Origin: Ophelia neglecta
Lineage: Eukaryota
NCBI GenBank assembly: GCA_965285935.1
Contig: OZ260663.1
Location: 93,124,001 to 93,188,000 of the forward strand
DNA length: 64,000 bases
Reading direction: 5' to 3'
Of this stretch, positions 241 to 64,000 are shown one piece after another. Position numbers and translations under genes: made by a program. Numbering within the stretch: position 1 is the first letter of the stretch; each line of letters begins with the position of its first letter. The notes under the pieces are model-generated. The model was not told the DNA's origin. It did not search any database and was given only the letters and a program-made list of their open reading frames with translations.

Positions 241-345
241 GCCGCAAGCGGAGCGAGTGATGCGCACTGCGTCGGCGCTGCGTTGACCACCCATTGCATT
301 GCGCCGCGGTACGGTGTGCATCGAGTTCTGATACTGACACTACCG
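241..345 (+). promoter_or_regulatory. Conserved upstream element, A1 copy
   Basis: GAGCGAGTG..GCGCACTGCG..CGCT-N7-CCACCCATTGC(287-297)..AGTTCTGATACTGACACT, ending ~130 nt before the ATG; shared by all paralogs. Confidence 0.8.
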
Positions 346-6156: not shown

Positions 6157-6530
6157 GGACACAGCTAGATGACGTTAAATAATGAAACTCTCGTCAATTT
6201 ACACTTGTGGTGTAAAATAATGCTAAATAGCCATTTCCAATCAAATAATATTCATTTATATTTATATAAATTATGGTGTGCACATTCATGAAGATTTAAA
6301 GTATATACTTTGCATGGATAATCTTCAATCAATTTCGGAGATGAAATATTTCTGGAACTTCCACTTGGATAGTTAAAAATTAAATGTGGGTGTAGCTCAC
6401 TCAAATGGCTAGGCTGCAATGATATTAAAAGCTGTAATATGTACATTTCGTTCGACCCGTCTTTCGATGCCATTTATCATGTTTATTGTAAATAGATATC
6501 ATTTAACTACTTTCGATGTGGCCAAAGTGA

Positions 6531-6635
6531 GACGCGAACGGAGCGTAAGATGCGCACTGCGCCGTCGCTATATGTACCACCCATTGCACTGCGCGGTGCC
6601 TCTGTGTACATCAAGTTCTGACACTGACACTAACA
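6531..6635 (+). promoter_or_regulatory. Conserved upstream element, B1 copy
   Basis: Core CCACCCATTGC at 6577-6587; AGTTCTGACACTGACACT downstream. Confidence 0.8.
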
Positions 6636-6683
6636 GTTTGTGCATAATACTTGGTGGAATAGTGGAAGTTACACACAATTACA

Positions 6684-9600
6684 ATGAACATCAAGTTGGA
6701 ATATATTATTCTATTCTTAGTGATTATGGCGATTCGAATACCTACAGGAAGCTCGAGTAAGTACTGCCTGTCATTGTTCAGTTAAAAGAAACGCCATCTT
6801 GAAAACATCAAAATCGGTCCTCGTTTTCAGATCAGATAAATACGTGGTAGCGAGTAATCCTATACAGTCCGTGCAATCATTGGAGTTTTACTTACGTTCA
6901 AATTGCCCCCCAATGTACTGTTGGGCGTGGACTGGACAAGGTTTTTGTTGGTTATGACGCAGTTAGAAATATGGTCAATCTGAGCACCTAGTACTATCTT
7001 CTAAGCAATGTATTATAATTTATTTCAAATAACATTGGCTCTACGCCCCTGAATGTATTTTTTCTGGTCCAAGCACGTTCGTTCCAACACAATACTTAGT
7101 GAATGACAATGAATAGCTAACAAACACGCAAAGTAAATTCTACCTGAAAGGCCACAATTATAGGCAAAAATTCAATTATTTTATTCCATAGATATTATCC
7201 CGTCTCCAATTCAATGCATAGCCAATACTTGTACTTGCCAAATAATATACATGATAACCAATGCATATTGCGTAAGATGTGAACTATGGCAAAATGAGTG
7301 CTATAAAACATTTAGATCCATTATCTATAAGTATTAAGCGCTTAATTATTTTAATAAATTATATATCACAATTTTATGCGTCTAAATTTTTATCTTTAGG
7401 ATTCAATTTGAATGTAAGTTAGTAAAATTTCTTTTACCAGTATCATTTATCCAGTATTATTAAGTCACAATCACATATTCGTTATTAACGGAACTAGGCT
7501 TTTTGAAAAGAGGCAGTGTGGACAAAAGAAAGTGTTTCTAGATGCAACTTGCTTAAATGCACTATTTTCACTTTGTGAAAGCTATAAGACAATAGTTTGT
7601 TGTAGGCTTACCGGAGAAAAAGTTTGGTTGTGGAAAGGGTGGGCTGTACCTCAAAGTTATATACAATGGAGTTGGCTGTTAATACTTGGGCAACTTTTAA
7701 TGTTCATTTTTTTCTGTACATTTTTCTTTATTGAAGTATTCTTCAATTAACGTTTAAAAATTAAGTTTTTGTCCTAAAATAAGTTCTTATTATAAAACTT
7801 GAATCTACATTAAAGAATATAACGGGTTTAAAAACAGATTTATTGGAATATCTATTTCCAATAGTACAACACGCGAAACAGCTTTTAGAATCCATTTTGT
7901 TTCTTAATTACCATTCAAACGTGCAAGCCTCAAAGCATTAGACTAAGAGTGCATGGCCTTTGACCGAGGAGAGTTTTATATACCGAGTAAATATGGCACA
8001 ATACGAACATATAGTACAACTGTATTACGCAAAATGTGCTTAGTACCTATCATGTTAACTCTCTGACACTTATCAATACTCCTAAATTTATCATAACCAT
8101 TTGTAGGAAACAACTATTTGATGGGCCAATGCAAGACTTATGCACGTAGTATAGTACATGGTTGCATAGAAAGTCTATATTACATGTAAATACTTGTCCT
8201 GTGGAGGGTTGTACTAAAATGCAGTCATATTTGTAAATTTTCACTAAGATCGCCATAGTTGACAAAATACCGCCCGTATACAAAGTGAAAGAAGTTATAA
8301 TCGGCATAAGATGCATACTAAAGATAATGTGAGCGAACCGATCCTTGTGTGAACTTCTAGCGTGGAATACTGTTCCGCCTTAGCTATCCTTCCAACAGCT
8401 CTTTACAACAATATCTGAGGTTAATTCTTACTTACATGTATCAGGTTGGTGGTATCAACAAGGATTAATTGGAAAAAAGTGAAGTCAGCCAATGTTTAGA
8501 ATATTTGCAGTACATTTTCTCACCTTTCTATGTACAGTTACGACCAGACAATCATTACTAGATAAAAGGGATGACAGTAAATTATCAAACATTCCACGAA
8601 CGTGAATTGTTAATAAAAAGAAAAGACATTGAATTAACGGTAACGGTGTTAAAGAAATAGCTACAATACATTATGGGATTTGATAGTTAAACCTAAGCCA
8701 CAATACGTTCAGAAAGCAGCCATTTAGTTAACTACCCAATCCAGGTCCCGGAACCTAGGGAGCCATGTATTGACTACAATGAAATATGTCGCAACGTTTC
8801 ATTGGTGGCCTATTGACAACTGGCACGATTATAATACACTGTTATTAAACAAATGGATTGCCCACAAACCGGTCAAAATTGCGAATACGTTTGGATCCAT
8901 GTGTGCCGCAATTAACGTATTGACATATAGATTCGACTATTAACTCTTTCAACAATACAGCCCTCTACAGAGGGCAGATACTCCTTAGTTACAGATACAC
9001 AAAGTTGAAGGGGTTAATAGTTTAGATACTGTATGTAGTTTGTAAATAAGCAAATTTAAACGCTGAGCACGTTCAATCTGACGAAAGTAGCTAGCTGGTA
9101 ACGCGTTGTAATTACACAAAATCAACCGCAAAAGCGATTCTTGCAACTTGTACAGCAAAGGTGTATGTTTTCATTAACTACTGATTGGGTTTAGAACTTT
9201 ATTTTCTGTTTGGGAGCTTGAGCTTAATTTATTGATGCGTGTGGAGCCGTGGCTGCTAGTTCCTGATGATTTCGGACCGACTATTATTGATCAATGATTT
9301 GGCTTTGTTGTCGGGTATCCACTCCAGGTTTTTACAGTGTACATGTATGAGTTGAATCGCCAATACTTCTCCTATGTTAACAGCATTAGTCATTGCACCA
9401 AGTAATACGGCTTTCATATCTCTACGAGCCTTTCAACAAGCATGCTAGAGCTATTGATCAATTTCAGTGGCAAGCATTGCCCTTGGCTGTTTTATTTAGA
9501 AACGATTAGTCATGCTGACCTAGATAAAGACTGGCATGTGGGATGATTACACATTGATACTAGATCTCTTACAAAAGTACAGGCAGGCAACTCAGTTGCT

Positions 9601-15300: not shown

Positions 15301-17125
15301 GGAACTGAACACGTTTAAGTATGAAACTATTATTTGAATGGTAATCAAAGGACTGACCATGTGTCATAAATAAGTTGATATGGAAACGGTTACGTTCTTA
15401 AGTCTAAGTGCGCAAATGGTAATGCCCGTTACTCATTTAGAAAGGGTATACTTACTTCATCACAAATGACATTAAAACATTCTGGAGAAGTTCCTTGGCA
15501 GACATTGAGCACGTTTCATGCGACGAAATGTTCCAATTCTCGGATGTCAATATAGAGGTTATTCATCGCAGCCCCTATAGCATTGTCGTGACTGCTCCTC
15601 ACATAAAAGAAAAAAATCAAAATGAAGGTTTTGGATTAGAGAATGACACCAATTTTAAAGAGGGGGAGACAAATATGTTGTCCCTGACAATATATATCAC
15701 ATCCGGAGCATTCCACTAAAGAACAATATCTAGTGTTGGCAGAATCAGGAGATCCCATAAATCTCTCCGAACAAAAACACGTGACTACTCGTTTGGGTAA
15801 AAAAAAACTCAAACTCTCAGCTTCTGTTTATAATGCCGACGGCATCCTTAACTCACGTTAGACATTCTACAGTCCACGCTGTACGACAGAATTGCGGCAG
15901 GCCATGCAATAAGGAGCATATAACATCAAAGTTGCCAGAGCCCTTAAATGACAGTGTTACTAGTGACCAGTTCTACCACGTGTACGTGTAAGAACGAACA
16001 CAGACGGGTTATTACACTGATTCTCCGCATGATGACACAGACATTTTGCTCGTTGACCTCCTCCCGAGGTCATTTTTTATTTCATATTCCTGCCCAGGTA
16101 ATTCAAGGACTTCAGGACTGTGCGGTCAACATACGAGTTATTTGCAATTGGAAGCTATCTTTGGGCTTTGTTTTGTATGTGAACATTCGACGCAACACTG
16201 TCTACAAGAATGGATACATTATACACCAACGTAAAACTGAAATATGTGAATAAATACCTTTAAAGGTTTAAATCATGTGGAATATAAATGTTAATCAAAG
16301 TTTTTAGAATTGTGTGTCATGAACTACGATTGACTTGTTCGCTAATTAAAATGTTCTTCTCTGTGATATCTTTGTGTAAAGTTTTTAGGCTATTACTACA
16401 AAGAATGGATACATATACTTTACCTTCATGAAGAAAACAAATAAGCGTACAACAATACACATTTTTTTCAAGAAAGCTATATATGGTGGCGGACTATGTC
16501 CTGCAGACATGCCTAATGAATCATTATAACAAACCATTCACCACCATCGGTTAGCTACATCTCGCATACATAGTGTTAACACACATTTTTCAATGCTGAT
16601 CGCACAATATATGAATGGTTGCCTGCGAATTTCTATGTCGTATCTCTCAGCATTGTGCCTATTTCCGCAATAACATTAGTTCATTGGCCAAAGGCGGCAT
16701 TAGTACTGAAGAGCTGTCGTTACGATTATGCTGATATGTGATCAATAGAGGTGTTTATATTCATCATTTTAAAGTTTTGCCTCCTTTATATGTATTTTGT
16801 TAATATGTTGATTTTAGCTTCGATATTACTGCAAGCCCCGCAGCGAGTGACGTGGAAAAGTCTTATGGACCATTTTCCATCAATATCATAGTTGAACATA
16901 ATTAGGCAACCATGCGTATTTGTCTGTGAGATCAAACCTGAAATAACGTTACTTACCGAGTGAATGATGATAATAATTGATGGGGTAATAATCAACACCT
17001 GACTGTCTTTGTTCAGACTTTGCAATCCTAAACAATCATTCCGACCTCTTTTTTGGCTTGGATGCTTTAAATATAAGTTGAAGACCTTTGAACCATTGTA
17101 ATATAGAATATGCGATCAGCTAACT

Positions 17126-17222
17126 GGGCGAGTGCTGCGCACGGCGCCGGCGCTATGCTTACCACCCATTGCATGGCGCCGCGGTACAGTGTGCATCGAG
17201 TTCTGATACTGACACTACCAGT
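17126..17222 (+). promoter_or_regulatory. Conserved upstream element, A2 copy
   Basis: Core at 17162-17172. Confidence 0.8.
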
Positions 17223-17326
17223 TTGTGAAGGAATACCCTGCGTAATACAGATATATTGAGAAGCAGATTATAATGTGAGATTACAGTATTAGTATTGCAG
17301 TATTTGGATAAATACGCAGATTTGCA

Positions 17327-20300
17327 ATGGATATTATACCTAAAGACATTATACCCTTTGTGATCATGGCAATATGGCTACCAACAACGAGCTCGAGTGA
17401 GTACTGTAAATACATTATCATATTCCTTGGAACGCCATCTTGCGCATTTACCAACCTTATTGCTGCGTGTGTTAACCTTGCATCCATTACTGAAACCATT
17501 TTAGTGGGTTGGCTTGACTTAGACGTTAGCTTATAGTATGCAATTAATGTTCTGTTATTGCTACACATATGCTTCGTTCGTAAGTTTCATCGGAAGTGTA
17601 AATATATCAGCATTGTTTTTACGAAATAAAATCGCAAGAAGATACTACAGTGGTCCCAGCGATGAATGGCCACTTGCGATGGCAGGACAGTTTTTGAATT
17701 GCCATGTACATCTTTTCCGTGTTTAAGTACCTCCGATTGGGTGTCACCTGCAATGTAGGACCACTTTTCCTTTGATTTAGGGCAGGCACTTTATCGAGGA
17801 GACCTCTGTATATATTATAATCTGTGCATCAAACCTACGGACATATCATATTTTGTTTTGCAAAGTTTACATACATTGACAACTGTTTCTTGTTATAAAT
17901 TGTTCCTCTTATGTAAATATATAAATTATCTTTACAAACTAGCACATTGAAATTAAAGTTGTAATATATTACTCTCCAAATGACTAGATATGCAGGAGTA
18001 AGTCTCTGGTACCATAAACAACAAGTCTATGCATAAGAATTTGTTGTCGACTGTGGCGAAGCCAATTGAAATAAGGCCTAGGAGACAGTCTCCTAAACTT
18101 AATGCATGGCTCGACCTATAGAATAATGCCTAGAGCTGTTGATTGCTTTTCCTAAATCCGAATTGCAAATAATATAATATTTTATTAAGAATGATGAAAT
18201 AGAGAAGCCTATCATAGTCTTTTACATTTTGGGAAAATAAGGTAAAGTAGAACCCCACCTTTGTAGTTAATTTCCATTATATTTTAATTCGTGGAAAACA
18301 CCCTTTGGTGTACGGCTTTGTCTTAATGTAAGATAATGCAGCGGAAGAAAGCATAAAAATGATCTATAAAAGTATCTGATAACCTGTTTATCACATTTTC
18401 ACATGGATAAAATAGTTAAAGTCAATTGGGGATTAATCCATAGGGTGTTATATCAATATTAAATATGCATACGTGTCCTGTTAATGGGTCTGATCGTATC
18501 TTTATCAAATAAAACATTTCTTTTGGTTGAATAAAATATCAGAGTTTCAAGAAACTTGTACAGTTAGTTTAAATTTGTGCACTTTACGAAACGAGTACAT
18601 CCATGGATAAAAACACCAAATCAACTGTTTAATACAAAAGACAATGTAATATTCCGCGCGGTATCATTGGAATCAAGTAAGAACAACATGTTTAAGGAGA
18701 GTCACTAAGTCGTAACTATTTTATGTATTTCCAGTTTTATCGGAAAATAATTGACACGAGGTAATTAGATGAGACCATAACTGAATAATTTCAGGAAAAA
18801 CAGGCAATTTTTTTTCTAAACTAACACCAAATGTTTCAAAAATGAGCCGTCTATTCCCCTTTATGTGATAATTTTGGATATTTATTAATCATTCTAGGTG
18901 AGGTTTTAGAAAAACAGCCCGGGGACGCATTGCGGTTTGCTCATGTTAATTATTATTACGATTGGACACATGAAAGGCATATAACGACAGTTTTTACACA
19001 AAAAAGAGAGATAAACGCAAAATTTAGGATCAAGGATCTTGAAAAACAGGTATTTAGGATAACGAACTCATTTTTTTAAAACAAATATTAAAGTCTAAAT
19101 ATATTCTGTCTACCTGAAAAAGGTCAACCAAGATTAGATATTTTTCCTTACATTCATTCAGCAATAAATTAATGTGACCTTTGAAGCGTCATTTTAAACA
19201 AATGGGAATGTATTACAAAACAATATCATTTATCCATATAATCGGTCAGAAATTATCGGGAACAACTAACCAAAGGCTGACACCGAATCAGGCCCTTTGC
19301 AAATGCTTAGGAGCATATCGCCCATCCCCAAGGGACAGCCTGGAGGTGGAGGCGTACATGCCTTCTCTTCATCTAAGAAGAGAGAGACTTGGGCTGCAAT
19401 ACGTGACTCTTCCATCCCTTCCTTCTCTAGTGTCTTTAACCCTCCTAACCCTTAATTGTTTGCCACCATTCCTTAGTTTGGAATTCGAATCCAGCAATCC
19501 CTAGGCAATCTGGGCTTCGAACTCAGATGGATTGCTGACAAGAAGCTACCAAGGATCCCATCATGGACATCCTGAGTGCGATAGCGACTATTAAAAGTTG
19601 AGCGTGACAAAAACTTTTATGAACCGTTACTGGTCCTTTTTAATCGGAGCAAAGAGCTTTGACCCATACTTTTAGGATGTTTTACACAATAAAGCTCAAT
19701 AAAATATCCCATATACCATTACTACATGTGGACAAGAATGTACACAGTTCTGATACTAACACGAATTACACCCAACTACAGACACTTAATGGCCCACCTG
19801 GTGCTTATGTGTCGTTAAACCAAAAATATCCAAATCCACAGGCTCACACACAGGCTCACACCTTAGTAGACTATAAATATGCATTGAAAATTATATTGTT
19901 TATTAATAACACGATGTAACCGGGTTTGGTGCCTATTTGCACCGTAAGACGAATAAATCGTTTTCATTGTCATTTATAATATATAAATATTTTTGTTCAT
20001 GGCAGAATCGGATGATGTTTGTTTATGGAGCACATACGACGCTACCTGTGGTGTGAACGAAGTAATACAAATGGAGCGTGCGCTCTACGGACGGATGGCT
20101 GTGGGTCGATGTATACCAGAGAACGTTGGTTTCATGATGGGTTGCCAGGTAGACGTTTTGAGTTACTTGGACTCGGTATGCTCTGGCAGACAGACGTGTC
20201 AGCTTAGACTCCCGCAGGATCACCCAGCAGCTGAATATCAACCTTGTCCACGAGGGTTGGAATCTTATTTACAGTTACAGTACAACTGTACAGCTGGTAA

Positions 20301-22676: not shown

Positions 22677-23728
22677 TAAGGACAACGCAAATATGATGAA
22701 GTTTAAAATGTACACACTGTCAGTGATTAACTAGTGATTTCATTAAACTGTTACATAGTCAGCGATTTGAAAGTACCCAATATAGTGGTAAAAGTTTGAT
22801 GTACATTTAGGATGAGTGCAACTATTATATAATGCGGATAGTTTCCATTTACTCTGCGTGAGAATAAATATTGCTTTGAGTTGAAAACACCATTTCTATG
22901 CTTATATAGCCGATGAACGAACCAGGGATATAATTATACTTTCTATTAGATATGTATTCGATGGAGGATTTTGGCCACAACATATAGAGTATTAAATTGT
23001 GGCTAATTATGAAAGTTTGTTCATTGACAAGTGCCATTGGTTGGAATAATATGGTGATAGTGGATTTACTACACGTTTCTCGTTGCTTCATTGAAGACGT
23101 GCTATATGAATAAACCATTCATTATCACAATGTGGAACCCATTACATTTGTGTGATGCTATCATTGCCTATTATGATTTTGATTCCTGTTCACAGTGATC
23201 CTACATCACCCATTTTAGCCGTATTCACTAGATTTTGGAACGGATGACAATGATGGCTGTCCCTGAAGGATGTTGAGTGAGCCCTCAGAAGTTTCGAAAC
23301 ATTTAGTTTCATTTGGCTATTCGTGTAGGATTATCTGCGAAGCATTGCATATTATATACATGGCATTGATGACACAATATTTGAATTCGTCGCGGATCTC
23401 CAAGTTAACTGATTCGGAGGAAGTTAAAAAGCTCATGATCGACGTGAAAGTTTATGTTAGATGTCACCTTAACCTCTTAAGATGGGCCAGCAATATCTCG
23501 GATAACAGTTTGAAAATAAGAAGTAAGAATGCCAACAAACAGTGATTTCAATAGTGGCTTCACTTTGGATAGCGCATCTTTTCCAAATGTTTTGCTACAT
23601 GATGATCACACAACATTGTTTGGATACATAACACACCAGTTTATCAATTAGTTCTACCATTTTAAGGTTGCACTTTAACTATTTCATTTTAACTTGATAG
23701 CATTTCAACAATTTTCCACACACGGTGA

Positions 23729-23818
23729 ACAGGGCGAGTGATGTGCACTGCGCCCTCGCTGTATTTACCACCCATTGCACTAATGTGTTCATCGAGTTCT
23801 GACACTGACACTAGCAGT
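23729..23818 (+). promoter_or_regulatory. Conserved upstream element before orphan B exon 1 (internal deletion)
   Basis: Core at 23768-23778; second GCACTGCGCC box partly deleted. Confidence 0.7.
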
Positions 23819-23867
23819 TTGTGAAGACTAATACTAAATTGATTATTGGAATACACACACACTTACA

Positions 23868-27585: not shown

Positions 27586-28084
27586 GAGACCAGAAGCCGG
27601 GCAAGAATCAACTCCTGGATATAGCTATAAAGAAACTGTCCCCATGCTGACAGAAAGGCAGAGGGCGCAGCAAACTCTTATGGATAGGGGTAATACTACT
27701 ACCGCTCAGAGACACGCCGCTGTCACCACGGGCGCCATGACACATCACGGGCAATTTCCGCCACTACCACTACCACCCACGGCATCACTCTCAGAAGCCG
27801 GACACTGTACCATCCACGGGACATTAAGCCGAGACAGCTATCCGCGTACTAACACCCAGGAAACACAACCTTTCATCGATCACAGTTCATCAAATGAGTG
27901 CCCAAATTCATTACGACGCATGCGCAGTAACAGGAAAGCCAAGGACCATTTCTACCACGAATTAGATCCGGAACATATCAAAGATCACGCTAGGCAGCCT
28001 CTGGATCATAAAGAATTAGACATCGAGAGATCAATTCTTGAACATGTGACCCCACTTCCTGATGTAATCTCGACATCCTCATAA
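27586..28084 (+). CDS. Isolated intact A-type terminal exon (cytoplasmic tail): alternative last exon of A2 or pseudo-exon
   Basis: Same acceptor as A2 exon 8 (gcatgtcgttgcag|gag), same length (499 nt) and phase 2, open frame with FPPLPLPP, HFYHELDP, PLPDV. No exons 2-7 recognisable between 23940 and 27585. Confidence 0.6.
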
Positions 28085-28894: not shown

Positions 28895-29390
28895 AAGATT
28901 AATGGTGTGGGAGGAAGTTAAAGCAGCTTGCAAGTCACTTGAACACTTTATGGTTGTTGCGTTAATCTATTAAGGTAGGATAACAATATCTCAGATAACA
29001 GCCTGAAATCAGTTATCAGAAAGCCCACAACCCCCAGAAATGACTTCAATAGTGACTGCTCTTTGGGACCAACTTTCCACCTGTTCACCTTCATCCATAT
29101 CTTCGATATTTTAATGCGTTCGCGGTTGATGATCAAAAGCAGAATGTATGGGGCATATAACAAAAAAAAATTATCAATCTGTTCAACCACCTTGAAATTG
29201 CGCGTCAGCAGTCGTGTTATAACAAAAAGGCACAACCGTTTCCACTTGGACAAGAGCGACGAGCAGGGTGTGTGATGCGCATTGCGCCGTTGCTGTACTT
29301 ACCACCCATTGCATTGCATAACGCAACCAACCATAAACTGTTCAAGTGTCTTGCAAGCTGCTTTAACTTCATCCCACACCAGTAAGTCTT
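28895..29390. repeat. ~70-bp inverted duplication (arms 28895-28964 and 29319-29390)
   Basis: ggtgtgggaggaagttaaagcagcttgcaagtcacttgaac versus the reverse complement of gttcaagtgtcttgcaagctgctttaacttcatcccacacc, with few mismatches. Confidence 0.88.
29261..29318 (+). promoter_or_regulatory. Truncated upstream element (5' half only)
   Basis: Core at 29302-29312, then abruptly replaced by an inverted duplication; no exon 1 follows. Confidence 0.68.
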
Positions 29391-34550: not shown

Positions 34551-34652
34551 GCGCCGCGAGCAGAGCGAGTGATCCGCACTGCGCCGGCGCTGCAGTTTCC
34601 ACCCATTGCGCTGCGCCGCGGTAAATGGAGTTCAGAAATTGACACTGCCAGC
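34551..34652 (+). promoter_or_regulatory. Conserved upstream element, A3 copy
   Basis: Core at 34599-34609. Confidence 0.8.
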
Positions 34653-34770
34653 TTATGTGTGGATACTACGAGGAATACAGACATAATGAGCTGCAAATTA
34701 TAAAATCAGGACTACAACATTACAATTACCACAAGATAGCATAGTTTTCGGATAAATACATAGACTTATC

Positions 34771-37700
34771 ATGGATATACTGCTTAACGATATTCTACGC
34801 TTTGTGATCATGGCGATATGGCTAACAACCGTAAGCTTGAGTAAGTACTGTAAATACATTATCCTCTGACAAGGGACGCCATCTTGCGCATCGTCCTGCC
34901 ATATTGCTCTGTGGGATTTTAGATACCAATGATGTTTGGCTCCCTATTACTGCTCTGTTTCAAGTAATGCTGATATTCATAACCGCTACTGTGAGTTCTT
35001 TTGAAGTTACATTAGTATGTAAAATGCTTTCCTTGAGAGCTTTATATGATATGTAAACGCCATTGGGTTTAAATGTGTATATGTACACATAATACTCCTA
35101 AGCCGGTTTCAACAAAAGATAACATATATGAGCGCCTTCTTTTATTGTATGTCAAAGTGACATAAATACCAGATATTGCATACAGAGTTACATCCGTCAC
35201 ATGAATATCATGCTACCTTCTTTGGGCTAGTTAACACATAGTAAAATGTGATATTACGAACAGTAGACCCCTGCCGAATTTTTGCCTTACGTTCCTAAAG
35301 GCTATTGATATTTAACAACTGGGGCAAAGTAAATAGTACGATGTAGAACAATATAATGGGAATTGACTGGGCTAGGGTGCCCATCTTTAAGTGTGGGGTA
35401 CTTTATACTAGGAGTATTTACATTATTTCATTTTGATTCGCAGTGAGCTCGTTCAACATAATGCACCCTAACCTACTGTACCTGTTAACCCAAGCGGTAT
35501 AAACATAACATTTTCAAGCGTATACCCTGATAAATAAATATTTCGTCGTTTGTGCATTTCGTCTAGTACAAATTTGGATTGGCCATTATAAACCAGTGGG
35601 CATTTTTTATCATTAAGGTATTTTCTCATATATTCACTCAAAATAAGTCAATCAATATTAATTTGGTAGCATCCTGGTCTCACATTATAATTATGATGAT
35701 AGAAGAGTGCGAAAATACAAATGATCACATAAATGGAAATACAAATGAATCAATTAGTAATTTACAATATGCAAAGGAAAATGTGCTATACATAAAACCT
35801 CAAATGAATTGAATAAACACAGATACAAAAACAAAACTAAATGAAAAATAAACCCAAGGTGAAATTCAACGACACCACTGGATTCCTTGTATATATTTCC
35901 TATTAGTGTTCAATACATATTATGCGCGTTAACACCGTTAAGCTTCCAAAAGATTCCATGTTAATGCATTTCTAAATTATTGCCCTCGGCGGCCATCTTG
36001 TTTTTCCGATCTTGCCCAAAACCTTTTCAGCACAACCCGACTACATAATGCCTCCGGCCCCCTTCGGGCGGAGGCATACCATTATTTTCAGCCAGAAATT
36101 ATATAATGAAGCGTGGTGCAATTTTGCAGATTTAAAAACCTCATAAATAGAAATAAAATTAAAATAAGGCACATTACAAATTATAACTTTGATACAACCA
36201 AATCCATTCTGTCTTGTTTTCTTTATCAGTGAAAACGTGTCATGATAACCGCGATGGAAAAAAGTGCAATTAGACTAGGTTACGTTCCAATAAGGTCGTG
36301 GATCAAATGCAGGATCAAACCAATGAGATATTTGAGTTTTTATTTAGAAACATATTATTGCAACTATCCTGGAAAATTGGGTGAAATAGATAGAAAAAAT
36401 ATTCTACAGTAGCTACAGGTACGTGTTTATGTTCCAATATGAGCAAAGCCTTGTACCATATGTGTATGAAATTTTAATTTATTTGTTTGCTACGCGAAGC
36501 TTTTTTTGTCCTGATTCATTGTGTTCAATTATCAGTTAATTTCAAAACATATTTGTGTGTTATGAAAGTGTTTCCTATAATATTTTCATATATTTCTTCG
36601 GTTTTTAGAAGAACAAGACGTGTGTTTTTGGACAACATACGAGCTTACCTGTGACGAAACCGAGGTTATACAAATGGAACATGCGCTCTACGGACGGATG
36701 TCGGTAGGGAGCTGTATACCGGAGAACGTAGGTTTCCTGATGGGTTGTCAGGAAGACGTATTGCAGCACTTGGACTCGGTATGCTCTGGTAGACAGTCGT
36801 GTAAGCTACAACTGCCAGAGGATGGAATAGCTACCGCACATCAACCTTGTCCACGAGGGTTGGAGGCCTACCTACAGTTGGAATATAACTGCATAACTGG
36901 TAAGGAAAACAAACATACTTTAATTTCATGGAATTTCGTGATAACAATTGGTACTATAACTATAGGCCGCCAGTTTGAGCAATACTTTCACTGAAGCAAT
37001 CATTTAACTTCCAGTACACACCTTGCCAACAGCGTGTGGCGGTAACCCTCTAACAGCCAAGGGAACCACTGGATTACTGGCCAATTTTGTAACGGAAAAG
37101 ACTGGTCAGGGATCTCAGGAATGTCCGTGGGAGATCCGAGGATCCCCTGGCCAAAAAGTGCGCCTCACCTTATATGACTACGGTGTATGGAATCCTTCCA
37201 CACCTGAGGGGGTAGGTGGCTCTGACGTTCTAGCAGAGAGAACGGATATATGTCGCATATACGCAAGGGTTTCAGAAGGTAATTCACGATAGAATAGATA
37301 TATTTGGTTCAGTGGCATGTCTTAAATCCGTTTTATATTTCTAATTAATAAGGTCACAGTCATGTGTTGATTAGAATCGATGTTGACATAGGGCATGTTT
37401 TCATATGTCCCATGTTGAAACCGGGCAATCATTGTTTAAACATAAAAATTTGAACACATATAATGTATAAAAGAGTTATTACTATAGACCTGTTTAATCA
37501 GCATACCCCATTGGGAATTCCATCACCATTTGTGGGGGTGAAGAAAGGGAGAAAGTAGTATACATGTCAGAGACAGAAAGCGTGTACATCGCCTTAACCA
37601 ACCCAAAACACAGTCAACAAGCGGCTTATTTTCTGCTTCGATACGAAAGTAAGTAATCCTATGCAAACAGATACATTTCACTCTTATATTGCTCTAAATA

Positions 37701-39329: not shown

Positions 39330-40130
39330 AAATAAACAGTTTTTAATGGCGATGTCTTATAACTGCTAAATAGTTATTCATCGACGGATTGAAACTATTC
39401 AAGGTCCTGTTAGTATTGTGATGTACAATATTTATAAAAAATGCCAAGACTACGATTTTATGTATAAGTAGGAATATATTCACCCGCAAATATGACAACA
39501 AATTACTTTGCGAATTTTGAGCTGTGGCTTATCAGGAAAAGTCCATGTACATTGGATGTAGATAACGTTATTCTTTGCAAAATTGAATCTTTGAAATCAT
39601 CAAATAGGTCCTTTTTCACGAGGTAAAACTATCACAACTGTATGATGCTGTACTGTATTATCATAATCATCGTTTCTGCTGCCTATTAGCGATGTATCAA
39701 ATACAACCATTCACTTTAGCCAATGGATTTCGGAAGCTTTTGTGGCAACCTTGGGCTTTGAACGGGCACTGGGATTACTTCGAAGGAGGAATTCGGCATA
39801 TCAGCGAAGAGAATAGATCATTCTAGCTCTTACGTTTAAATTAATTGTGCAAGGCCAAAATCTCGGAATATGATGGACTACAAACAACAAATGATTTGTG
39901 CAATTATTAGACCACTATTTTGGGAGAGCATCTATGCCACTTACTCACCTACATGGACGTGGTGTTTGGACCGATATTCGAAAGGGCGCGATTCTGTTGA
40001 TGAATACTAGAATGTACGTGGTGCATACATGCAAAACATATCATTTATTTCAACCCGTTCAGTTGCTCTCTGAAAGGTTTGTTATAATGAGGCGTCAGTT
40101 CAAATAGTTTCGCCATGAATAAGTGTGCGT

Positions 40131-40232
40131 CGAGCAGAGCGAGTGATGCGCAGTGCGCCGTCGCTGTGTTTACCACCCATTGCACTGCGCGATGGCAGTG
40201 TGCACGTCGAGTTCTGATACTGACACTACCAT
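40131..40232 (+). promoter_or_regulatory. Conserved upstream element, B2 copy
   Basis: Core at 40173-40183. Confidence 0.8.
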
Positions 40233-40280
40233 TTTGTGAAGATATACTTTCTGGAATAGTGGAACTTATACCAATTCATA

Positions 40281-43200
40281 ATGACTACCTTCTTGGAATA
40301 CTACATTCTAATACTCGTGATCCTGGCCATTTGGATACCAAGAGGCAGCGCGAGTAAGTACCGTCTCCTATACTTCACGTATAGGAAACGCCATTTTGAA
40401 CCCAGCCAAGGCGCTCCTCAGTTTAGGCGCACGAAAATAAGCGAGCAATCCGCAGTAGCTAAGGCAATATTTCGAGTTAAACTTTCGCTCAAAATGCACT
40501 CATTTATATATTGTATAATAAAATGAAGTTCTTGACCAATTTGCAAATATAATCACTATTTAGGCTCACGATTCTGGCCCATGAGTAATGTATTATAATT
40601 TATTGCAAATGGCACTGGCTTTAGACGCCCGAATGTACTGTTGTTGATATGTACTCTTTCGCTCCAATACTAGATGTGCAATTCTGTGGGCACGATTGTT
40701 TTTACAATGTAAAGTTCTACTCACAGGCCAACACTACATGAAACAGGTCAATAATTCTGAATAAGATATAACGCCGTTTAGCCCTTTCTGTTTGATAAAT
40801 GCTAATATTTGTGTAATTAATACGCGCCAACCTTCCCCCACCCCAAGCCACACTACCCCAACACGCAGCTCCTTTTATACTCATCAGGAATCCTACACAT
40901 GACTGATTCATATCAATTAAAATTCGTTGTACATAAAATTTGTGTATGCATAAATGTTATTGTGGTAAAAAGATATAGGTAATTATGTTTAATCTGTGTT
41001 ATACATTATTATTAATGCAAATTACTCACTTCGTGAACCAGGGCAGAAAGAGAATGACGGCAATTAGTAATGATCGTTTATATACGTATTAACAGATATA
41101 GAAATTAGAAATTTAAAAGTAAGCTGCATCTGCGGCAGGTTAATATGTAAACATATTACGCGGAATATTCCAATTTCGTGTTTTAGAGTATTAATTTGTT
41201 TCTCAGTCGATAAATACCACAGGCAGCTTTATCTTCTTACAGATGCCATTTCATAACTTATTACAAGAAACTTTTAGTAAAAATGTTAACAAAAAAATCC
41301 AAAATTACATTTGCCCCCCCCCCCCCATGTCGCATTTTCTGCAATGATTTAGTGCAATAGTGAATGTATTTGGAAACAAAGATTGCTGTAGGTCCATCAC
41401 CAATCAGGAGTTGGCAATTTAAACCATCCGAAAAAGCCAAAAATGGTCGGTAGGAGGCCCTCCACGTACAATCATTAAATATCTATTGCAACGAAAAATA
41501 GTAAAAGAAGAATATAATATAATTTTACCAATGTAAATAAAACAGTTATCCTCGACGAGTGTCAAATCACCAGATCAAAGGGGGCCAGGGTTCACAGTAA
41601 GACGAAATCTAAGCATGTCGTAGAAGAGTCTACGAAGGACTAGGCGGAAGATCAATGCTTCAGATTAAAGAAGTCTTAAAGTTATACTTTAGGGTTAGTT
41701 ATTTCACCTAAGAAAACATTAGAAGAGAGATTTCAAGAATGCGTGTTATGTTTGCGTCACACATAACGCATATGTTGTGTGAAGTGAGGGCGCGATGGAC
41801 CGCACAGAAAGGGAGTAGATACGCTAGACAGCAAGGAAGACGGTTTATGCACTAACAACATGTCGATCTTTCAATTTTTTCCTCTTCATTTCGTTGGCAT
41901 TTTTTCAACAGCTTAAATGCCATGTGGTCAGTTGCGCATGGCCAACACATGGGCAGCACAGTATTACTGCTTAGCATAGCTGTTAAATATTATAGGAACA
42001 CAGAAATATACACACTCCCTATTCGTAAGCCAGAGCTTTAACCCCCAACCCACAGCAACCCTCTACCAACACTGCATCTGTCGAATGAATGCTATACAGC
42101 TAATAGCGAAATACTGATTACAAATAGATTAAATGTAAATTGGCTATCCCGTTCTGGTGCCTGCTCCCTAGGTCACAGAGGGTCACCTATTTGGAATTTA
42201 AACCTTTGACATCCTATGTTATGGCTCCACAAGGTCCAGCTGTAGGACTATATCTTTAACAAAATTGCCCCATAGTTTCAGAACTGGGCCGTTTATCTAA
42301 AAACTAAAACGGGAACATGGCTCCATTGAGGTTTATCTCAACTTCAATGGATTTTATAGGAATTTTAAGGTTTGTGGTTGCTCACACACTCGTAATTCAT
42401 AGCCTAAGCGTCAGGCAGACTATTTGTTTTCGATGTTGTTACTTTCTCATTATTTATCTGCGCGCAGAGCACTGTACTTGCACCGATGCAACTATAGGCC
42501 TGAACCTTTCAGGAAGGAGGGGGTAATTTAATAGTAAATGATAGAACGTTCGAAAGCGAATTGATAGCTGACAAACAGATAAGTCAAAACTTTAACATTA
42601 AACAAATATCTGTATATATTTTAAATAGTCAAAATAAAACACTGAACACTTACTGTGATCATATTGCGAAATTAGAATATTATTGCTATTTCTGTTTTTC
42701 GTTTTATTGCGGGAATTTCTAATCTGGTAATGTATTTAAAAGGTATACACCACAGATACGGACACCGCTAGGCTTAAAGTGTACATGTTATGTCTTAAAC
42801 AGACATGGCCATTATTCCTCACACTGGCCTTTGCTTACTTATTAGTCCTTACACGGCTTTCATCCATCTGCGTACGTTTTGCTAGATTAATGATCGGTCG
42901 CAGCAGTAGGTGTGCCCGCAGCTGCCTTATACAGGAACAATGAGTAATGCTACCCTACACGCAGTCTGGCAGGTGGAATAATTGTTTATCATTGGTACTA
43001 GGCATCTGACAATATACAGGCGGGCGATCCAGCTGGTTGGCCTACACACTATGCGGTGTTATTTATTTGATAGATCAGTCTAAAGAAGTATTGTAGTACT
43101 AAATATACTTTGTTAGTATTAAAGTCACTAATGCTATGGACCTTATGAATGCCATAACATTTGAAGAAAACACAGTGTAGGAAAAATCAACACAATGCTG

Positions 43201-48220: not shown

Positions 48221-49370
48221 ATTATTATAGTGTAGAATGCAGCTATGGTGATAGACAAAACGTGCCCACATTCGTAGGTAGGATATGCGACAGGATTTCA
48301 GGTTTCCGGAGATCAATAGCCTGAGCATCACTGTTTCATGACCTATTTTGTTATGTGCCAAACATATGTAGTGATTGCTGATTTCGTTTCGTAAGGTCAT
48401 AATCTCAGATAAGTGTTTTAACTTATAAACAGAAGCAGTTCCCGATTAATAGAATTGGTATTTCGCTTCCTACTTCGTGGCCTGATAATTTGACAAAGTC
48501 TAAAAATGAAAAAGCAGTTAGTTGAGCAATATGATATAACTAATTCCAATGTTTATTTATGTAAGACTTATAACGTTACTCATTAATATAGTGGAAGTGT
48601 GTATAACAATGAGGAAGCAACAAAATATATAGGTTAAGCGAATTCCGTTTATCGTCATTGAAATACACACTCAGTAAAAACGGCTGGGTAAAATATCACT
48701 TTTGGAACGTTTATTATTTTCGGAATCCAATAAAGATTATAACGATATACAATATCTATCAGAAGACATATTCTTCTTCTCTGTCAGCAAGCCTATTTAT
48801 ATGGTTTTTCATAATAACATAACATTCTTTATATAACAATGAGCCATAATAAGCTTATGTTATATGTTGTTAATTTTGTTCTCAAACACATTTTGTATGA
48901 ATAAAAATGTAACTAATTGCGATGCACACAACACAGTTTATTTCTTGTCGTCGACATGCTCCCACGCCATTTTCTTCCGTCAGGACAGAAGAGGAATTAT
49001 GTTGGATATGGAGTCCAGAGCCGAATATTCCTTTGAGTAATTCCATTTGAAATATCCCCACAAATGCGCAGTGTATTTATACGAATAGTATTTAATTAAA
49101 TTAATTGATTTGGTCAGCGAAGGTCTATGGCGCTAACTGACACAGAAACCGCTATGTCATTAAAATATTATTTTACTTGTATTTCAAGAATATTATTGGT
49201 ATACTTTGAACATTTTTCTGTATGCAACTGATCACATTCCTTTAAGCCGCTTTTGACATTCGCACATACCTATGTACACCTTACAAATGTTCGATATTCT
49301 ATCAGCTATGGTTCGACGGTTGAATACTAATTTGATGACCTTCTAACCATCCTTATAGAGAGTTGGTGAG

Positions 49371-49476
49371 GCGCAAGCACAGCGAGTGCCGCGCACTGCG
49401 CCGGCGCTGTGTGTACCACCCATTGCACTGCGCCGCGGTACTGTGTACACTGAGTTCTGATACTGACACTACCAGT
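49371..49476 (+). promoter_or_regulatory. Conserved upstream element, A4 copy
   Basis: Core at 49416-49426; GCACTGCGCC repeated at 49393 and 49425. Confidence 0.8.
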
Positions 49477-49597
49477 TCGTGAACGAATATCGTGTGGAAG
49501 TGAGGCGTTACATTATAATATTAGGAGTACAGCATTAGGATTATAGCTTAATTTTGCTTGAGAGGGAATATCGTTTGGATAAATACGCCACTGGGCA

Positions 49598-52500
49598 ATG
49601 GATACACTGCTGAAGGACTTTATTCTACGCGTTGTGATCTTGGCAATATGGCTAGCAACAGTAAGCTCAAGTAGGTACTGTAATACATTATCATATAACA
49701 AGGGACGCCATCTTGCGCACGAACCAACCATCTTGCTATTTGTGTTAACATCTGAAGGATGGGTGATTCCTTGTTAGTGCCCACATTTGACTAATGCTTG
49801 TGCCGATAATGTATAATATTCGTGTATGCAAGAAGCTTTTTTTTTTACAGTGGTCATATTATTTATGCGACGGAAATGGCACTATGAATATTCTTTTAGC
49901 TCCTGAAATGACCTTTATGTAATAGCAATATGCGTATATTGTTTCTCGACCAGATCTAACGAAACTGTACCTCTAACGGGTAAGGAATCTATTCACATTC
50001 ATCCACTCTATTTCTCTGTTTAAAATGGCGACAATTGCACTCGCTGGAGCTTATTGAAGTATATTGACATATGGTTATCACACCCCCCCCCCCCCTCCCC
50101 CCTTTCTCCTCGTATGCCCATATTCTCATGAGAAACAACCGGGGCAAACTAATTTTTATAAATTTATAACACAAAAGATAATTAATAATTCCTACCCGCT
50201 TACGGAAAATAAGTGGAAATATATAGCCCAACTCAACAAGTCTTCTATGAGCACAATATGCCTAATACTATAGTAATCTAATACTTTTCTTTCCTTTCGT
50301 TTAAGGTAACCTAAAATGGCGAAAAATAGTTAATCGCAAAAGTTATAACTTTTAAATATAAAAAAGGCATGTTCCATAAAATAATATTTCATATGCTTAA
50401 AATCAAAACGTAGACACAAGCGCATTTCAATATTTAAAATGTATTTAATTTGGGCAATTCAATCCGTGTTTACAATCACACTCTGAACACGGTGAAATCA
50501 TGTAGGGTTTTATGGTAACTTTTGACAATAAGCATCATACATTATATCTTTATGAATGTAGAAAAAATTAGGAAAATGCGACATAGTCAATTGTGTTCAT
50601 ATTCCCATTCTAACCCCCTAAATTGTATCGTTACCATTAATTGAGTCTTATACGTTTAGAAACTACAAATATAATATATGTATTGAATCCGATGATATGT
50701 CAGGCAACTTTTTATCTAAAACATGCGAAATATAAAATATGAAAGTCTAATGGTTAATGCAAATTGCACTTTTAGACAATCAATTACACAAGAGACATTC
50801 AACAGAAGCTTTTATCCTAGAAGTTGCTCTCACGAGAAGATGTAGGTTTCACGAAATACTTAAACAACGAAATTCTTCGTAGTGAATTCACGTAGTACAC
50901 GGAAAGCGAATGACAACAGCAGTTTTTCATGTTTTCAAGTATGTGCGATACACCATGTTGGATTGGTCAGGCAGAGAGAATTATTTCTTGTTGTTGTACG
51001 TAATAAGTTGTACTGAAAAGAACAATTGTATTAACAATTCTGTTGCCAAACTAAAATGTGTTAACTTATAGTGCGGTATCATTACCATGGACATCTTAAA
51101 AAGAGTCATCGATCTTATGTGGACTCTTCTCGAGCCTGATTCTAAATTGGATTCTTCAAGTCCTTAAGACGATTGTTGCATTTGAATATTGATGGAATAT
51201 TTATCCGTGAAATAAGAAAATGCCCTTTTCATCCTACAGATTTCACACCCCCGGGTCAGTGATTTATACATCAGGGCTACGTGTCTCCCCTTAAAATCAG
51301 TCCGAAAAGCAAAGCTCTTACAAATATATCTAAGAAAAAAAACCCATAAGGGTGATAAAATGGAGCGTTCAATGTATATGTTCCTTCTTAATCATTGTTG
51401 TTTCGATCATATCTGTTCCAGTGCAACAATTCATTAATTTACTACAGCAAACTTATCTAATTATTTGTGTAGAGTTTCTTTCATCTGGTAAACTCTTTTT
51501 TTTCTGAATAAATTTGGATGTATTTAGTTGATAAACATTGATGCAATAAACACGGACGGGGACCAAATAAACGAGGAATATATTAATTTTTGTGGACTCG
51601 CTAGAGGCCCTCCAGCTTGGAGCCCAGATCTTCCAAACACCATGTTGTGACCCAGCGTATGCCGACGATGTGACGATCATGGCTCTCTCACATCACAATC
51701 TTCAACTTATCGTTAACGCAGCCATGTCATACAGCAGGCGATGGAGGTTCAGTTTTAACCCCAAAAAGTCCGTGTACATGTTATTTTCCTCCACGCCGTC
51801 CAAACAGAGACATCCAAAACCTTTAGTGATGGGAGATTCCCTGTTGACAGCTGAAGAAGGATGTACCCACCTTGGGATTCCCCTGTCTCAGTCACGACGG
51901 TACCTAACTGAGGCAATTGACAACAAAATTCTCTCCGCCAGGAGAAAGTCCAACGCCATATTTGGTATCGGAAGCTCCTCGAACGGACTTCAACCAGCAT
52001 TAGCCAGTAAACTCTACAAAACTATCATTCTCCCCAGTCTTTTATATGGATTGGAGCTCATGGATCTACAGGAAAGTGACATTGACAGACTCGGGAAAGC
52101 CCATAGAGTAGAGGGGAAGCGACTACAGAGGATCTCCCCTCGATTAGCAGCCCCACTTAGCTACTGCACTATGGGGTGGTGGGCTATTGAATGCGAAATA
52201 GACTATAATCGACTTTTGCTCTTATACAGCATTCTCAGCGCGAGACCAGGGTCGATTTTGCGTAAGACGATTATTGACAGAAATGTGGAGTATAGCCTTA
52301 GCAATTCTGCGCAAGGGGGGCCAGTAAGTGCCATGATTGCTGCCTGTCACAAATACGGTCTAGGTGATGCTTTGGAACAATCAGTGCTTCACGGTATCCT
52401 CCCGGGCAAGCGCCAGTGGAAAAACATAGTGAAGAACGCCATTAATCATGCTGCTGACCAAAACCTCAAGCTATCTTGCCTGTTTTATCCTAGCACGCGA

Positions 52501-55986: not shown

Positions 55987-56413
55987 AGATGAACATTAAA
56001 AATAAATACGTCTTCAGTTTACAATAGTGGGTGATCAAACTGCTTATAGTCATTTACGAATTGAAACTATTCAAGATTATATCAATATTGTTATGTACAC
56101 AAGTTAAACACTTAGAATATATTCCATTCCCTTTCTACAAGAAAGCATAGTTCTTGGAGTTCGTTTATTTGACGTTAGCACTGTCTTGTTCGTAAGGATT
56201 TTTACAAGTAGATGACTATTCTCTGGAAAATGAAGACAACCTACTTCACGGATGAAGCACTGTGGGTTTTTAAGAAAAGCATCTTGCCTAGTGCCATTTA
56301 AGGCATAATGACCTTTTCACCACATTGGATATAGGTTACGTTAAGGGCTGATGTATGATGTTACCTTTGCTTATTAAAAATCATCATTTCTCTCCGGCCA
56401 TTTTAGGCGACAG

Positions 56414-57185
56414 TCATAGGGTGTCCGAAATACATCCCACCAAAAGGCGCTGTGGCAGAGAAGCAGAGTAACGAGATTTCCGCAAGATGTTCCAATTCTG
56501 GAATAGGATGGCGCTCGTCGTTTAGCCGCTAATCAATCATATTTCAATTTTCATACGACAAGCTATATAAACCCAAACTAAACACTATATTTCGGAATAC
56601 TTTTGAGGGATTCTCGTTGTGATAATCATAGCCGCTGCCATTATCATATACTTGTGATTGGCATTAATAGTTTTCGCAGGTCAGTTTTATATTTGTCATA
56701 TCCGGGACCTACTGCTAAAGAGCACGACCCCATGCCGGTCACACACGTGAGATACTCTCAAAGGAAGGGAGTATACATCTACTCCAAACATACACGGATC
56801 TGTGCGTCCCGATGCGGTAACACCTGATGGAGGATTTCCGCCTCTGTCTTTCAGATTGACGTCATCATACCTGGACACGGAAAGTACCAATCACGTGAAA
56901 CCAAGTCAACAGTGCCGACTGCGTGACAATAACCAAGCTACACTCCAACGACCTTACACAGAACATTAATATGAATCGCCGAAGGTCATACGGCGCACGC
57001 GCAGTACGAGTGACCCTAGTGATCCGTTTTACCGCGAATTAGATTCGAAACACATTCGGATTTCATTGTAATCTGCCACACGAGTCGGATCGCTTTATGG
57101 AGTCGGATCGGACCGGTCCCATCCGTGTCCACACGGCCAGGGCAAATTAGCTGATACCGGGGCCAGAGGAGGTGACCACGTTTAA
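56414..57185 (+). pseudogene. psiB 3' remnant (partial exon 5, TM exon, tail exon)
   Basis: IGCPKYIPPKGAV matches B2 exon 5. Degenerate TM exon ~56605-56680. Frameshifted tail with YESP and DPFYRELD relics. No promoter or exons 1-4. Confidence 0.85.
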
Positions 57186-57940
57186 ATTACTATTGTATAA
57201 AATGAGTATAGTATGATCAAAAATTCTTATTGGAAAGTTGGATTTGTCAATTGTTGTGTTGCTCAAAAGAAAAATTTCTATTTGTCTTCATAATTGATAT
57301 TTCCTTTTTCTCAATTTCTTTGCTAAAGATTCATTGTTTTTCTGAACACAATGAAGCTGGATTGTGATCATATTAACAAGCATGACTACATTTGCATGCT
57401 AAATATTTGACGGAATTATCGGTTTTCCAAAGTCAGTAACCTGGTCAACACTGCCCTCATGACCTAGTTATTTATATGTCACCTTAGGAAAACAGATGTA
57501 CAGATCACAGTTGATTTCGTTGTGTTTGAATATAGTTTAAGTATCTTAAAGTAACAGTAAACAATGTGATATCTTAAAGTAACAATAACCTTTTTAAGAG
57601 CTGGATTTTTACCAGATTATGCATTGGATATATGTTTTATTATGAGATATTAAATTCATTGATTTTGTCAGCAAAGAAACATTGTGCTACTAGACACAGA
57701 AATATCATTAAATGTCGTAATTTAGAGAACCGATGTGGCTTCCTAGTTTAATATTGGTTTACTTCTTGTAATTGACTATATGCGACGGGAGCGTTTAAAA
57801 TCATATTCAACATATTAGCCAGTTTTGACATTTTAAAATATATAGACCTACAAAAACATTTTCGATGACTTACCGGCTATGCTTGGACGGATGAATATTA
57901 ATTTGGAGAATATCCTACCATCCTGAGATAGAATGAGTGA

Positions 57941-58046
57941 GCCGCAAGCACAGCGAGTGCGGCGCACTGCGCCGGCGCTGTGTGTGCCACCCATTGCACC
58001 GCGCGGCGGTACAGTGTACACCAAGTTCTGATACTGACACTTCCAG
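57941..58046 (+). promoter_or_regulatory. Conserved upstream element, A5 copy
   Basis: Core at 57987-57997. Confidence 0.8.
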
Positions 58047-58176
58047 ATTGTGAAGGAATACTATGTGGAATTCAGATATTTTGTTAGGCAGATGATTATA
58101 TGAGCATTACACGCTTAAGATTTTAGTTTGGTGTTGCATGAAAGAGGGTATCCTTTGGACAATACACGGCTTTGCC

Positions 58177-63129: not shown

Positions 63130-63579
63130 AGATGAAGATTAAAAATAAATGCGTCTTCAATTTACAATAGTGGGTGAACAAACTGCTTATAGTCATTTAC
63201 GAATTGAAACTATTCAAGATTATATCTATATTGTTATGTACACAAGTTAAACACTTAGAATATATTCCATTCCCTTTCTTCAAGAAAGAATATTTCTTGG
63301 AGTTCGTTTATTTGACGCTAGCACTGTCTTGTTCGTAAGGATTTTTACAGGTAGATGACTATTCACTGGAAAATGAATACAACCTACTTCACGGATGAAG
63401 CACTGTGGGTTTTTAAGAAAAGCATCTTGCCTAGTGCCATTTAAGGCATAATGACCTTTTCACCAGAGTGGATATAGGTTATGTTAAGGGCTGATGTATG
63501 ATGTTACCTTTGCTTATTAAAAATCATCATTTCTCTCCGCTGTTTGTGATGAATCTAAGGCGGCCATTTTAGGCGACAG

Positions 63580-64000
63580 TCATAGGGTGTCCGAAATACA
63601 TCCCACCAAAAGGCGCTGTGGTCGAGAACCAGAGTAACGAGTTTTCCGCCAGATGTTCCAATTCTGGAATAGAATGGCGCTTGTCGTTTAGCCGCTAATC
63701 AATCATATTTAAATTTTCATACGACAAGTTATATTAACCCAAACTATAAACACTATATTTCCGAATACTTTTCTGGGATTCTTATTGTGATAATCATAGC
63801 CGCCGCATTTATCATAGCAGTCCCTACACTTGTGATTGTCTTCATTAGTTTTCGCAGGTCAGTTTTACGTTTATCATTACATGTGTCTGTTTACTACGTA
63901 TGTCGGTTGATTATCAATGTATCAGAAGTTTTACTTATATTTGTCGTATCCGGGACCTACTGCTAAAGTGTACGACCCCATGCTGGGTACACACGTGAGA
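63580..64000 (+). pseudogene. psiB 3' remnant, duplicate of 56414-57185, runs off window
   Basis: Same junction (ggccattttaggcgacag) and same truncated exon 5 as the 56.4 kb copy. TM exon acceptor lost (ttctg|ggatt). Confidence 0.82.

Follow-up and report, generated by a model that had tools for sequence, protein, structure and literature searches.

The window analysed here (the whole 64,000-nt stretch C5:93,124,001-93,188,000 of the 762-Mb Ophelia neglecta assembly) raises the question of what the short non-coding block is that recurs, always in the same orientation, ahead of one gene after another. Our preferred answer, to which we assign a probability of about 0.75, is that the block constitutes a family-specific proximal promoter, and probably also the transcript start, of approximately 100 tandem genes for single-pass receptors of the SUEL-lectin/CUB/Sushi type. 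That it binds protein, sets the place of transcription start and drives expression are points that we infer from the DNA sequence. A family-specific conserved promoter of a tandem receptor array is an element of known type, of which this instance is new, and a literature search for its core motif returned chance primer matches only.

The core of the block, the 11-mer CCACCCATTGC, is present in exact form nine times in the 64-kb window, on the + strand only, against a chance expectation of 0.84, and none of 100 shuffled windows contained nine. The cores begin at positions 287, 6577, 17162, 23768, 29302, 34599, 40173, 49416 and 57987, and a preliminary description of this DNA, which had listed nine copies with starts 46 nt (36-48 nt) before these positions, was thus right about all of them. 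It was also borne out in placing a CGCT 7 nt 5' of the core in eight of the nine, the sole exception being the truncated copy at 29302 (TTGCTG). The copies, together with the remains of one more, are located in the window as follows:

239-382, + strand: element copy 1, with upstream module (239-309), linker (310-322) and downstream module (323-382); CGCT at 276-279 and core at 287-297, both on the + strand
6529-6677, + strand: element copy 2, of the short-leader class, with the ATG 107 nt past the core start
17114-17257, + strand: element copy 3
23720-23861, + strand: element copy 4, whose linker has lost 10 nt, heading a partial gene
29254-29325, + strand: element copy 5, of which the upstream module alone remains, with CGCT changed to TGCT
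34551-34687, + strand: element copy 6, whose linker has lost 7 nt
40125-40274, + strand: element copy 7, of the short-leader class
49368-49508, + strand: element copy 8
57939-58082, + strand: element copy 9
47-133, + strand: first-exon relic (family D18) that has lost its ATG and belongs to a decayed tenth element copy

Translated searches, in which the exons were sought one by one rather than as a joined protein, support the further claim that the element stands before gene copies, given that copy 4 heads a partial unit, copy 5 a pseudogene and the other seven window copies complete genes. The complete genes begin with a signal-peptide exon and a SUEL-lectin exon (Pfam PF02140), continue with one CUB-like and one Sushi-like exon and finish in a tail exon with the stop codon. 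In the partial gene of copy 4, the tail exon (27617-28081) is the sole exon found. The decay of the element parallels the decay of its gene, both in copy 5, which is cut off past the core and followed by a pseudogene that lacks a first exon and has stop codons in its lectin and CUB exons, and in the decayed tenth copy at the window edge, which occupies C5:93123901-93124001 and ends on window base 1. This last copy and its relic form a dead unit of presumed promoter plus first exon that directly precedes the live gene 1, the relic lying 340 nt 5' of exon 1 of that gene. Past genes 8 and 9, at 56410-57053 and 63501-63683, we also observed Sushi-like and tail-exon fragments, one of them with a stop codon, which have neither a first exon nor an element and look like the debris of partial duplications.

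Beyond the window, a sequence-only profile built from 32 non-redundant copies found 102 matches in the genome at E <= 0.01, every one of them within C5:92,537,587-93,507,586 (0.97 Mb), and a BLAST-type search with a single copy as query placed 40 of 40 scored matches in the same region. Neither search thus gives any copy outside the cluster, and copies scattered through the genome, the pattern of the dispersed repeat that the preliminary description had envisaged as a counter-case, were not found. The last profile match on the - strand is at 92,932,230 and the first on the + strand at 92,937,945, with no exception on either side, from which it follows that the cluster consists of two head-to-head arms with their innermost elements 5.7 kb apart. 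The junction of the arms (C5:92,932,145-92,937,945) falls outside the window, and the innermost presumed promoters point away from one another. The census holds no extra copy in the opposite orientation, and the number of copies approximates that of genes, a search with the CUB-like exon yielding approximately 95 close family exons in the same span, or roughly one per element. Distant relatives of this exon (31-49% identity) form smaller groups at 13-105 Mb on C5 and 16-94 Mb on C2; the genome profile search found the element near none of these, which makes it private to the present sub-family, at about one per gene.

The weakest profile matches are three peripheral left-hand copies (E 3.5e-5 to 1e-3), two of which precede peripheral CUB exons at 92.53 and 92.55 Mb by 7-7.5 kb, and a right-hand outlier at 93.507 Mb is still strong (E 3.8e-18). 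The element therewith appears, on sequence comparison, to diverge together with its genes. A genome-wide search for the 23-nt pattern GCGCT-N7-CCACCCATTGC, allowing at most one mismatch, gave 81 matches, 79 of them at C5 92.63-93.37 Mb, against none for the reversed control, and one of the two outside the cluster (locus L001) is without the rest of the element. The 12-mer CCACCCATTGCA has 156 matches genome-wide against 30 for its reversed control, with approximately 75 estimated to lie in the cluster; the approximately 80 outside represent a roughly 2.7-fold excess that is not interpretable, as the control contains CpG and is biased low.

Half of the copies (51/102) were read at sequence level, namely those of the window, of 200 kb of the left arm and of 17 loci of 3 kb. 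In 50 of these 51, a signal-peptide first exon lies 3' of the element in the same orientation; this short exon, from its initial ATG to GAG|GTAAGT at its end, codes for a hydrophobic signal peptide. The first exons in the window, and a motif in the intron that follows the first of them, are:

476-548, + strand: first exon of gene 1, encoding the signal peptide; it starts at the ATG, and its last base directly precedes the GTAAGT donor
6684-6756, 17327-17396, 34771-34840, 40281-40353, 49598-49670 and 58177-58249, + strand: the equivalent first exons
584-594, + strand: ACGCCATTTTG in intron 1 of gene 1, a YY1-like CGCCATnTT motif

In 40 of 49 copies, the GCCAT of this intron 1 motif, (A/G)CGCCAT(C/T)TTG, lies 33-41 nt past the splice donor. 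Apart from the element itself, the motif is the one non-coding sequence with strong conservation that was seen near the first exons, and it probably belongs to the same promoter-proximal architecture.

The anatomy of the block was derived from a weighted information profile over the 51 copies, with positions counted from the first C of the core. Conservation spans approximately 140 nt, from -48 to about +95, so that the length of ~100 bp (105 nt) previously given is too short, the block extending to window position 382 in copy 1. Similarly, GAGTTCTGAYACTGACACT, which had been taken to mark the 3' end, is present but is not the end, as conservation continues to approximately +95. Three parts can be distinguished:

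-48 to +22: upstream module, made up of GAGCGAGTGATGCGCACTGCGCCGGCGCTG, a variable TATTTA-type spacer and CCACCCATTGCA(C/T)(T/C)GCGCCGCGG
+23 to +35: linker, of low conservation and shortened by 7-10 nt in several copies
+36 to +95: downstream module, GAGTTCTGATACTGACACTACCAGTTTGTGAAGGAATACTAGGTGGAATAC, which starts GAGTTCTGATACTGACACTACCAGTTTGTGAAGGAATAC...

Spacing is strict within the two modules. The CGCT is invariant in a 50-copy alignment and keeps its 7-nt distance to the core in 49 of 51 copies (GGCGCT-N7-CCACCCATTGC), while the letters of the spacer itself vary freely. In the downstream module, the spacing from GAGTTCTGA to ACTGACACTACCAG is identical in all 48 of 48 copies, and the distance from the core to GAGTTCTGA ranges from 26 to 37 nt, being 36 nt in 40 copies. 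The box reported as repeated 32 bp apart is indeed so, GCACTGCGCC occurring at -23 (with at most one mismatch in 45/51 copies) and again at +9 (29/51), and a perfect 10-nt palindrome, GCGCCGGCGC, is found in 30 of the 51. Throughout, conserved columns form long runs that lie beside freely varying spacer columns. The modules also differ in composition: the upstream module has 65% G+C, a mean of 9.4 CpGs and a CpG observed/expected ratio of 1.27, the downstream module has 40% G+C and a ratio of 0.51, and the corresponding values for the surrounding 264 kb are 38% and 0.86. The description of the element as CpG-rich within AT-rich DNA is consequently accurate for its upstream module (65% versus 38% G+C).

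Evidence that the block is under constraint comes from global pairwise alignment of five segments in 48 copies (1128 pairs; shuffled-sequence level 0.57-0.60). Among pairs with a first-exon identity of 0.55-0.75, the upstream flank (0.60-0.61) and intron 1 (0.62-0.63) are accompanied by a first exon at 0.62-0.68 and an element at 0.78-0.79; in the 22 most recent duplicate pairs the same segments stand at 0.88, 0.91, 0.93 and 0.96, respectively. The element is the best conserved of the five segments in 92.5% of the 1128 pairs, and its identity averages 0.79 even between opposite arms. Two earlier observations made by eye, that the element is conserved across gene types A and B and that its flanks cannot be aligned, both hold under alignment, with a mean A-versus-B element identity of 0.78 in the window against 0.60-0.61 for the flanks, which pairwise alignment puts at the shuffled-sequence level. 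The variable columns follow genomic neighbourhood, a G at the first core position (GCAC..., or GTACAC) being limited to about 11 leftmost copies, and this sharing of sub-family variants between neighbouring copies argues against cluster-wide homogenisation. Since the variable columns track neighbourhood in this way, the invariant ones reflect selection on particular bases.

Where might transcription start relative to the block? The distance from the core start to the ATG is 93-217 nt overall (50 copies), and the copies fall into two classes. In the short class (n=20) the ATG lies at +93 to +108, the block nearly abuts it, and none of the 20 copies has an upstream ATG from +58 to the start codon. 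With only approximately 10 nt between block and ATG, transcription must start inside the block or upstream of it, and upstream of -50 there is no conservation. In the long class (n=30) the ATG is at +165 to +217, with an extra 70-110 nt past the block and 0-6 upstream ATGs between element and start codon, which is awkward if the whole stretch is mature 5' leader; these copies may have their start site elsewhere, or a leader intron. In the window, the extra bases occupy 383-475, 17258-17326, 34688-34770, 49509-49597 and 58083-58176, and they occur in left-arm copies too. The GGAATAC-type end of the block recurs within this insert just before the ATG, and a short inverted repeat (GAACACTGA ... 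TCAGTGTTC in locus L030) occurs in some long-class copies. The extra bases could have arisen by insertion or duplication long ago, or could be a leader intron. On the other side of the block, the stop codon of the preceding gene lies 373-1814 nt 5'. Three sequencing runs, from one sample and none recorded as RNA, contain the locus, each covering 67-83% of a 6-kb stretch; introns are covered in all three, and the runs therefore appear to be DNA.

Under the proximal-promoter reading, the upstream module (-48 to +22, 65% G+C, approximately 9 CpGs) would be where one or more sequence-specific DNA-binding proteins dock. The constant 7-nt gap, whose letters are free to vary, and the 32-nt distance between the boxes suggest one long DNA-binding surface or a fixed complex. 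GGCGCT and CCACCCATTGC, 7 nt apart and flanked by the two GCAC(T/C)GCGCC boxes, might be contacted by a multi-zinc-finger protein or by a fixed assembly of proteins. An indel-tolerant linker would then connect the upstream module to the downstream one, which may hold the initiation site, possibly at an initiator-like CCAGTTT, followed by the first 40 nt of the 5' leader. This CCAGTTT is conserved at about +56, with the A of CCAG replaced by G in a few copies, including copy 1 (window position 345). Were transcription to start at approximately +25 to +60, the CpG-rich module would fall at roughly -35 to -105, the usual place of activator sites in TATA-less promoters. The simpler of the two proposals in the preliminary description, that of "simply a shared core promoter", fits all testable points, namely the fixed orientation, the location 93-217 nt before the ATG, the restriction to the cluster, a constraint above that of the coding exon, and the shared decay of element and gene.

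The identity of a binding protein was approached through consensus strings. None of those for CTCF, NRF1 (the ungapped palindrome), YY1, the GC box or CCACACCC matched the elements better than shuffled elements. For CTCF (consensus CCASYAGRKGGCRSY), the best match had 3-5 mismatches in 50 elements, the same distribution as in shuffled ones. A GLI-like site had been proposed, yet a perfect GACCACCCA is present in just 1 of 51 copies, and the suggested KLF box covers the CACCC part of the core but not its remainder. Several identities of other kinds were tried and rejected. An upstream open reading frame or micropeptide has its ATG in 24 of 51 copies and an open frame in 13 of 51, and the linker deletions of 7 and 10 nt are not multiples of three; Rfam at a permissive threshold gave chance-level snoRNA matches only (E > 4); and ARAGORN finds no tRNA in the element.

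An extension of the promoter reading would make the element a promoter-choice unit too, such that each cell randomly activates one or a few of the approximately 100 genes, in the manner of protocadherins, olfactory receptors or NK receptors. We consider this unlikely, although a number of features are in keeping with it: approximately 100 nearly interchangeable promoters in one 1-Mb array with two mirror-image arms, a constraint on the element that exceeds that on the adjacent coding exon, and approximately 9 conserved CpGs in a mildly CpG-depleted region. Furthermore, a location 93-217 nt before the ATG resembles that of the protocadherin CSE, which lies ~200 bp upstream with a CGCT box (PMC4978886, PMC3333863). 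On such a reading, the remaining genes would be locked through methylation of the CpGs in the upstream module, and shared distant enhancers would take part. However, the match to the CTCF consensus is no better than chance, every gene has its own 3' exons instead of shared constant ones, the census contains no copy in opposite orientation and so no evident enhancer-type copy, and plain co-regulation of tandem duplicates would lead one to expect shared promoters just as much. In its fullest form, in which the element would be the choice module of a one-or-few-of-~100 receptor system that evolved independently of vertebrate protocadherins, possibly with a methylation-sensitive multi-zinc-finger reader of GGCGCT-N7-CCACCCATTGC and with arms competing for shared hubs, the proposal is, judged from the sequence, likewise doubtful.

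Less probable still is that the conserved part acts mainly as RNA, a 5'-leader element for translation, stability or localisation, with a true promoter that is unconserved. In the short class the downstream module comes nearly up to the ATG, which makes transcription of at least part of the block very probable, and short leaders without upstream ATGs would suit a role of this kind. Folding, however, speaks against it: RNAalifold on 50 copies gives -2.19 kcal/mol with seven weak pairs and a covariation term of -0.03, the 30 long leaders fold no better than shuffles (mean z +0.6), and there is no Rfam family (best E 4.2). Moreover, constraint is strongest in the CpG-rich upstream module, and the lack of conservation beyond -50 would leave the genes no recognisable promoter.

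We regard as very improbable the idea that the element is a boundary or insulator between neighbouring transcription units and not the promoter itself. One copy does lie between each pair of genes, as close as 373 nt past the previous stop codon, and the block is GC-rich and partly palindromic (GCGCCGGCGC, 30/51 copies); yet its distance and orientation are tied to the first exon downstream while the gap to the stop codon upstream varies over 0.37-1.8 kb, the CTCF consensus is unmatched, and the downstream module continues into the leader. Finally, the view of the similarity as a functionless by-product (a tract of gene conversion, a mobile-element or small-RNA-gene fragment carried along by the duplications, or a short coding frame upstream) can draw on the descent of all copies from tandem duplication and on a 23-codon open frame plus stop in the consensus (ATG at -27 to TGA at +42), but is already largely refuted here by the confinement to the cluster, the lack of a tRNA or Rfam identity, the conserved runs beside freely varying spacers, variants that follow neighbourhood and not homogenisation, and flanks decayed to random level on both sides.

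The element marks all of the approximately 100 genes of a megabase-scale, mirror-symmetric receptor cluster, and offers a short and precise handle for reporters, a bait for the binding protein and a defined set of CpGs. As a result, promoter choice for cell-surface diversity in an invertebrate, beyond the vertebrate protocadherin and olfactory systems, becomes directly testable; were choice to operate, individual cells would gain distinct SUEL-CUB-Sushi receptor identities. Even with plain co-regulation of the genes, the element would provide a clean example of a promoter constrained above the adjacent signal-peptide coding sequence.

Among known elements, the Staf/ZNF143 binding site (SBS) is an 18-bp sequence that has CCCR at positions 3-6 and a C as its twelfth base (PMC3082894). 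When the core is read as CACCCATTGCAC, these minimal features, CCCR and C12, are present in 35 of 50 elements, a likeness that carries little weight as 209 of 510 shuffled elements (41%) have them as well. Like SBS sites, the core would also sit a few tens of bases 5' of the presumed start, in a CpG-rich setting. Unlike the SBS, position 12 is here C or T, and the fuller SBS consensus aligns to the core only with a 2-nt shift.

A parallel in arrangement is provided by the clustered protocadherins, whose CSE is ~22 bp long, lies ~200 bp before the ATG, contains a CGCT box and binds CTCF; a strict distance to the neighbouring SSE is needed, and the CSE is also present in the HS5-1 enhancer (PMC3333863, PMC4978886). 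As in that system, each unit of a large tandem array of surface receptors here has one conserved element approximately 100-200 nt before the ATG, the adjoining sequence is less conserved, and spacing is fixed as in the SSE-CSE pair (49/51 copies). The CGCT is invariant here as well, although a four-base match is weak evidence of relatedness and there is no sequence homology to the CSE beyond it. In contrast, the present block is approximately 140 nt long, about six times longer, and its match to the CTCF consensus is at chance level; all seven complete genes of the window have their own lectin, CUB, Sushi and tail exons and no shared constant exons; and no non-promoter copy comparable to that in HS5-1 was found. 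Given these differences in length, CTCF match, gene structure and copies, the element is at most CSE-like in action and not a member of the CSE family.

Other systems offer a similar comparison. The KIR/Ly49 receptors of NK cells, the olfactory receptors and the upstream classes of Plasmodium var genes are families of tandem surface-receptor paralogs, each with a near-identical proximal promoter that outlasts the divergence of the surrounding DNA, and variegated or mutually exclusive expression has been shown in them experimentally. The sequences of these promoters are unrelated to the element described here.
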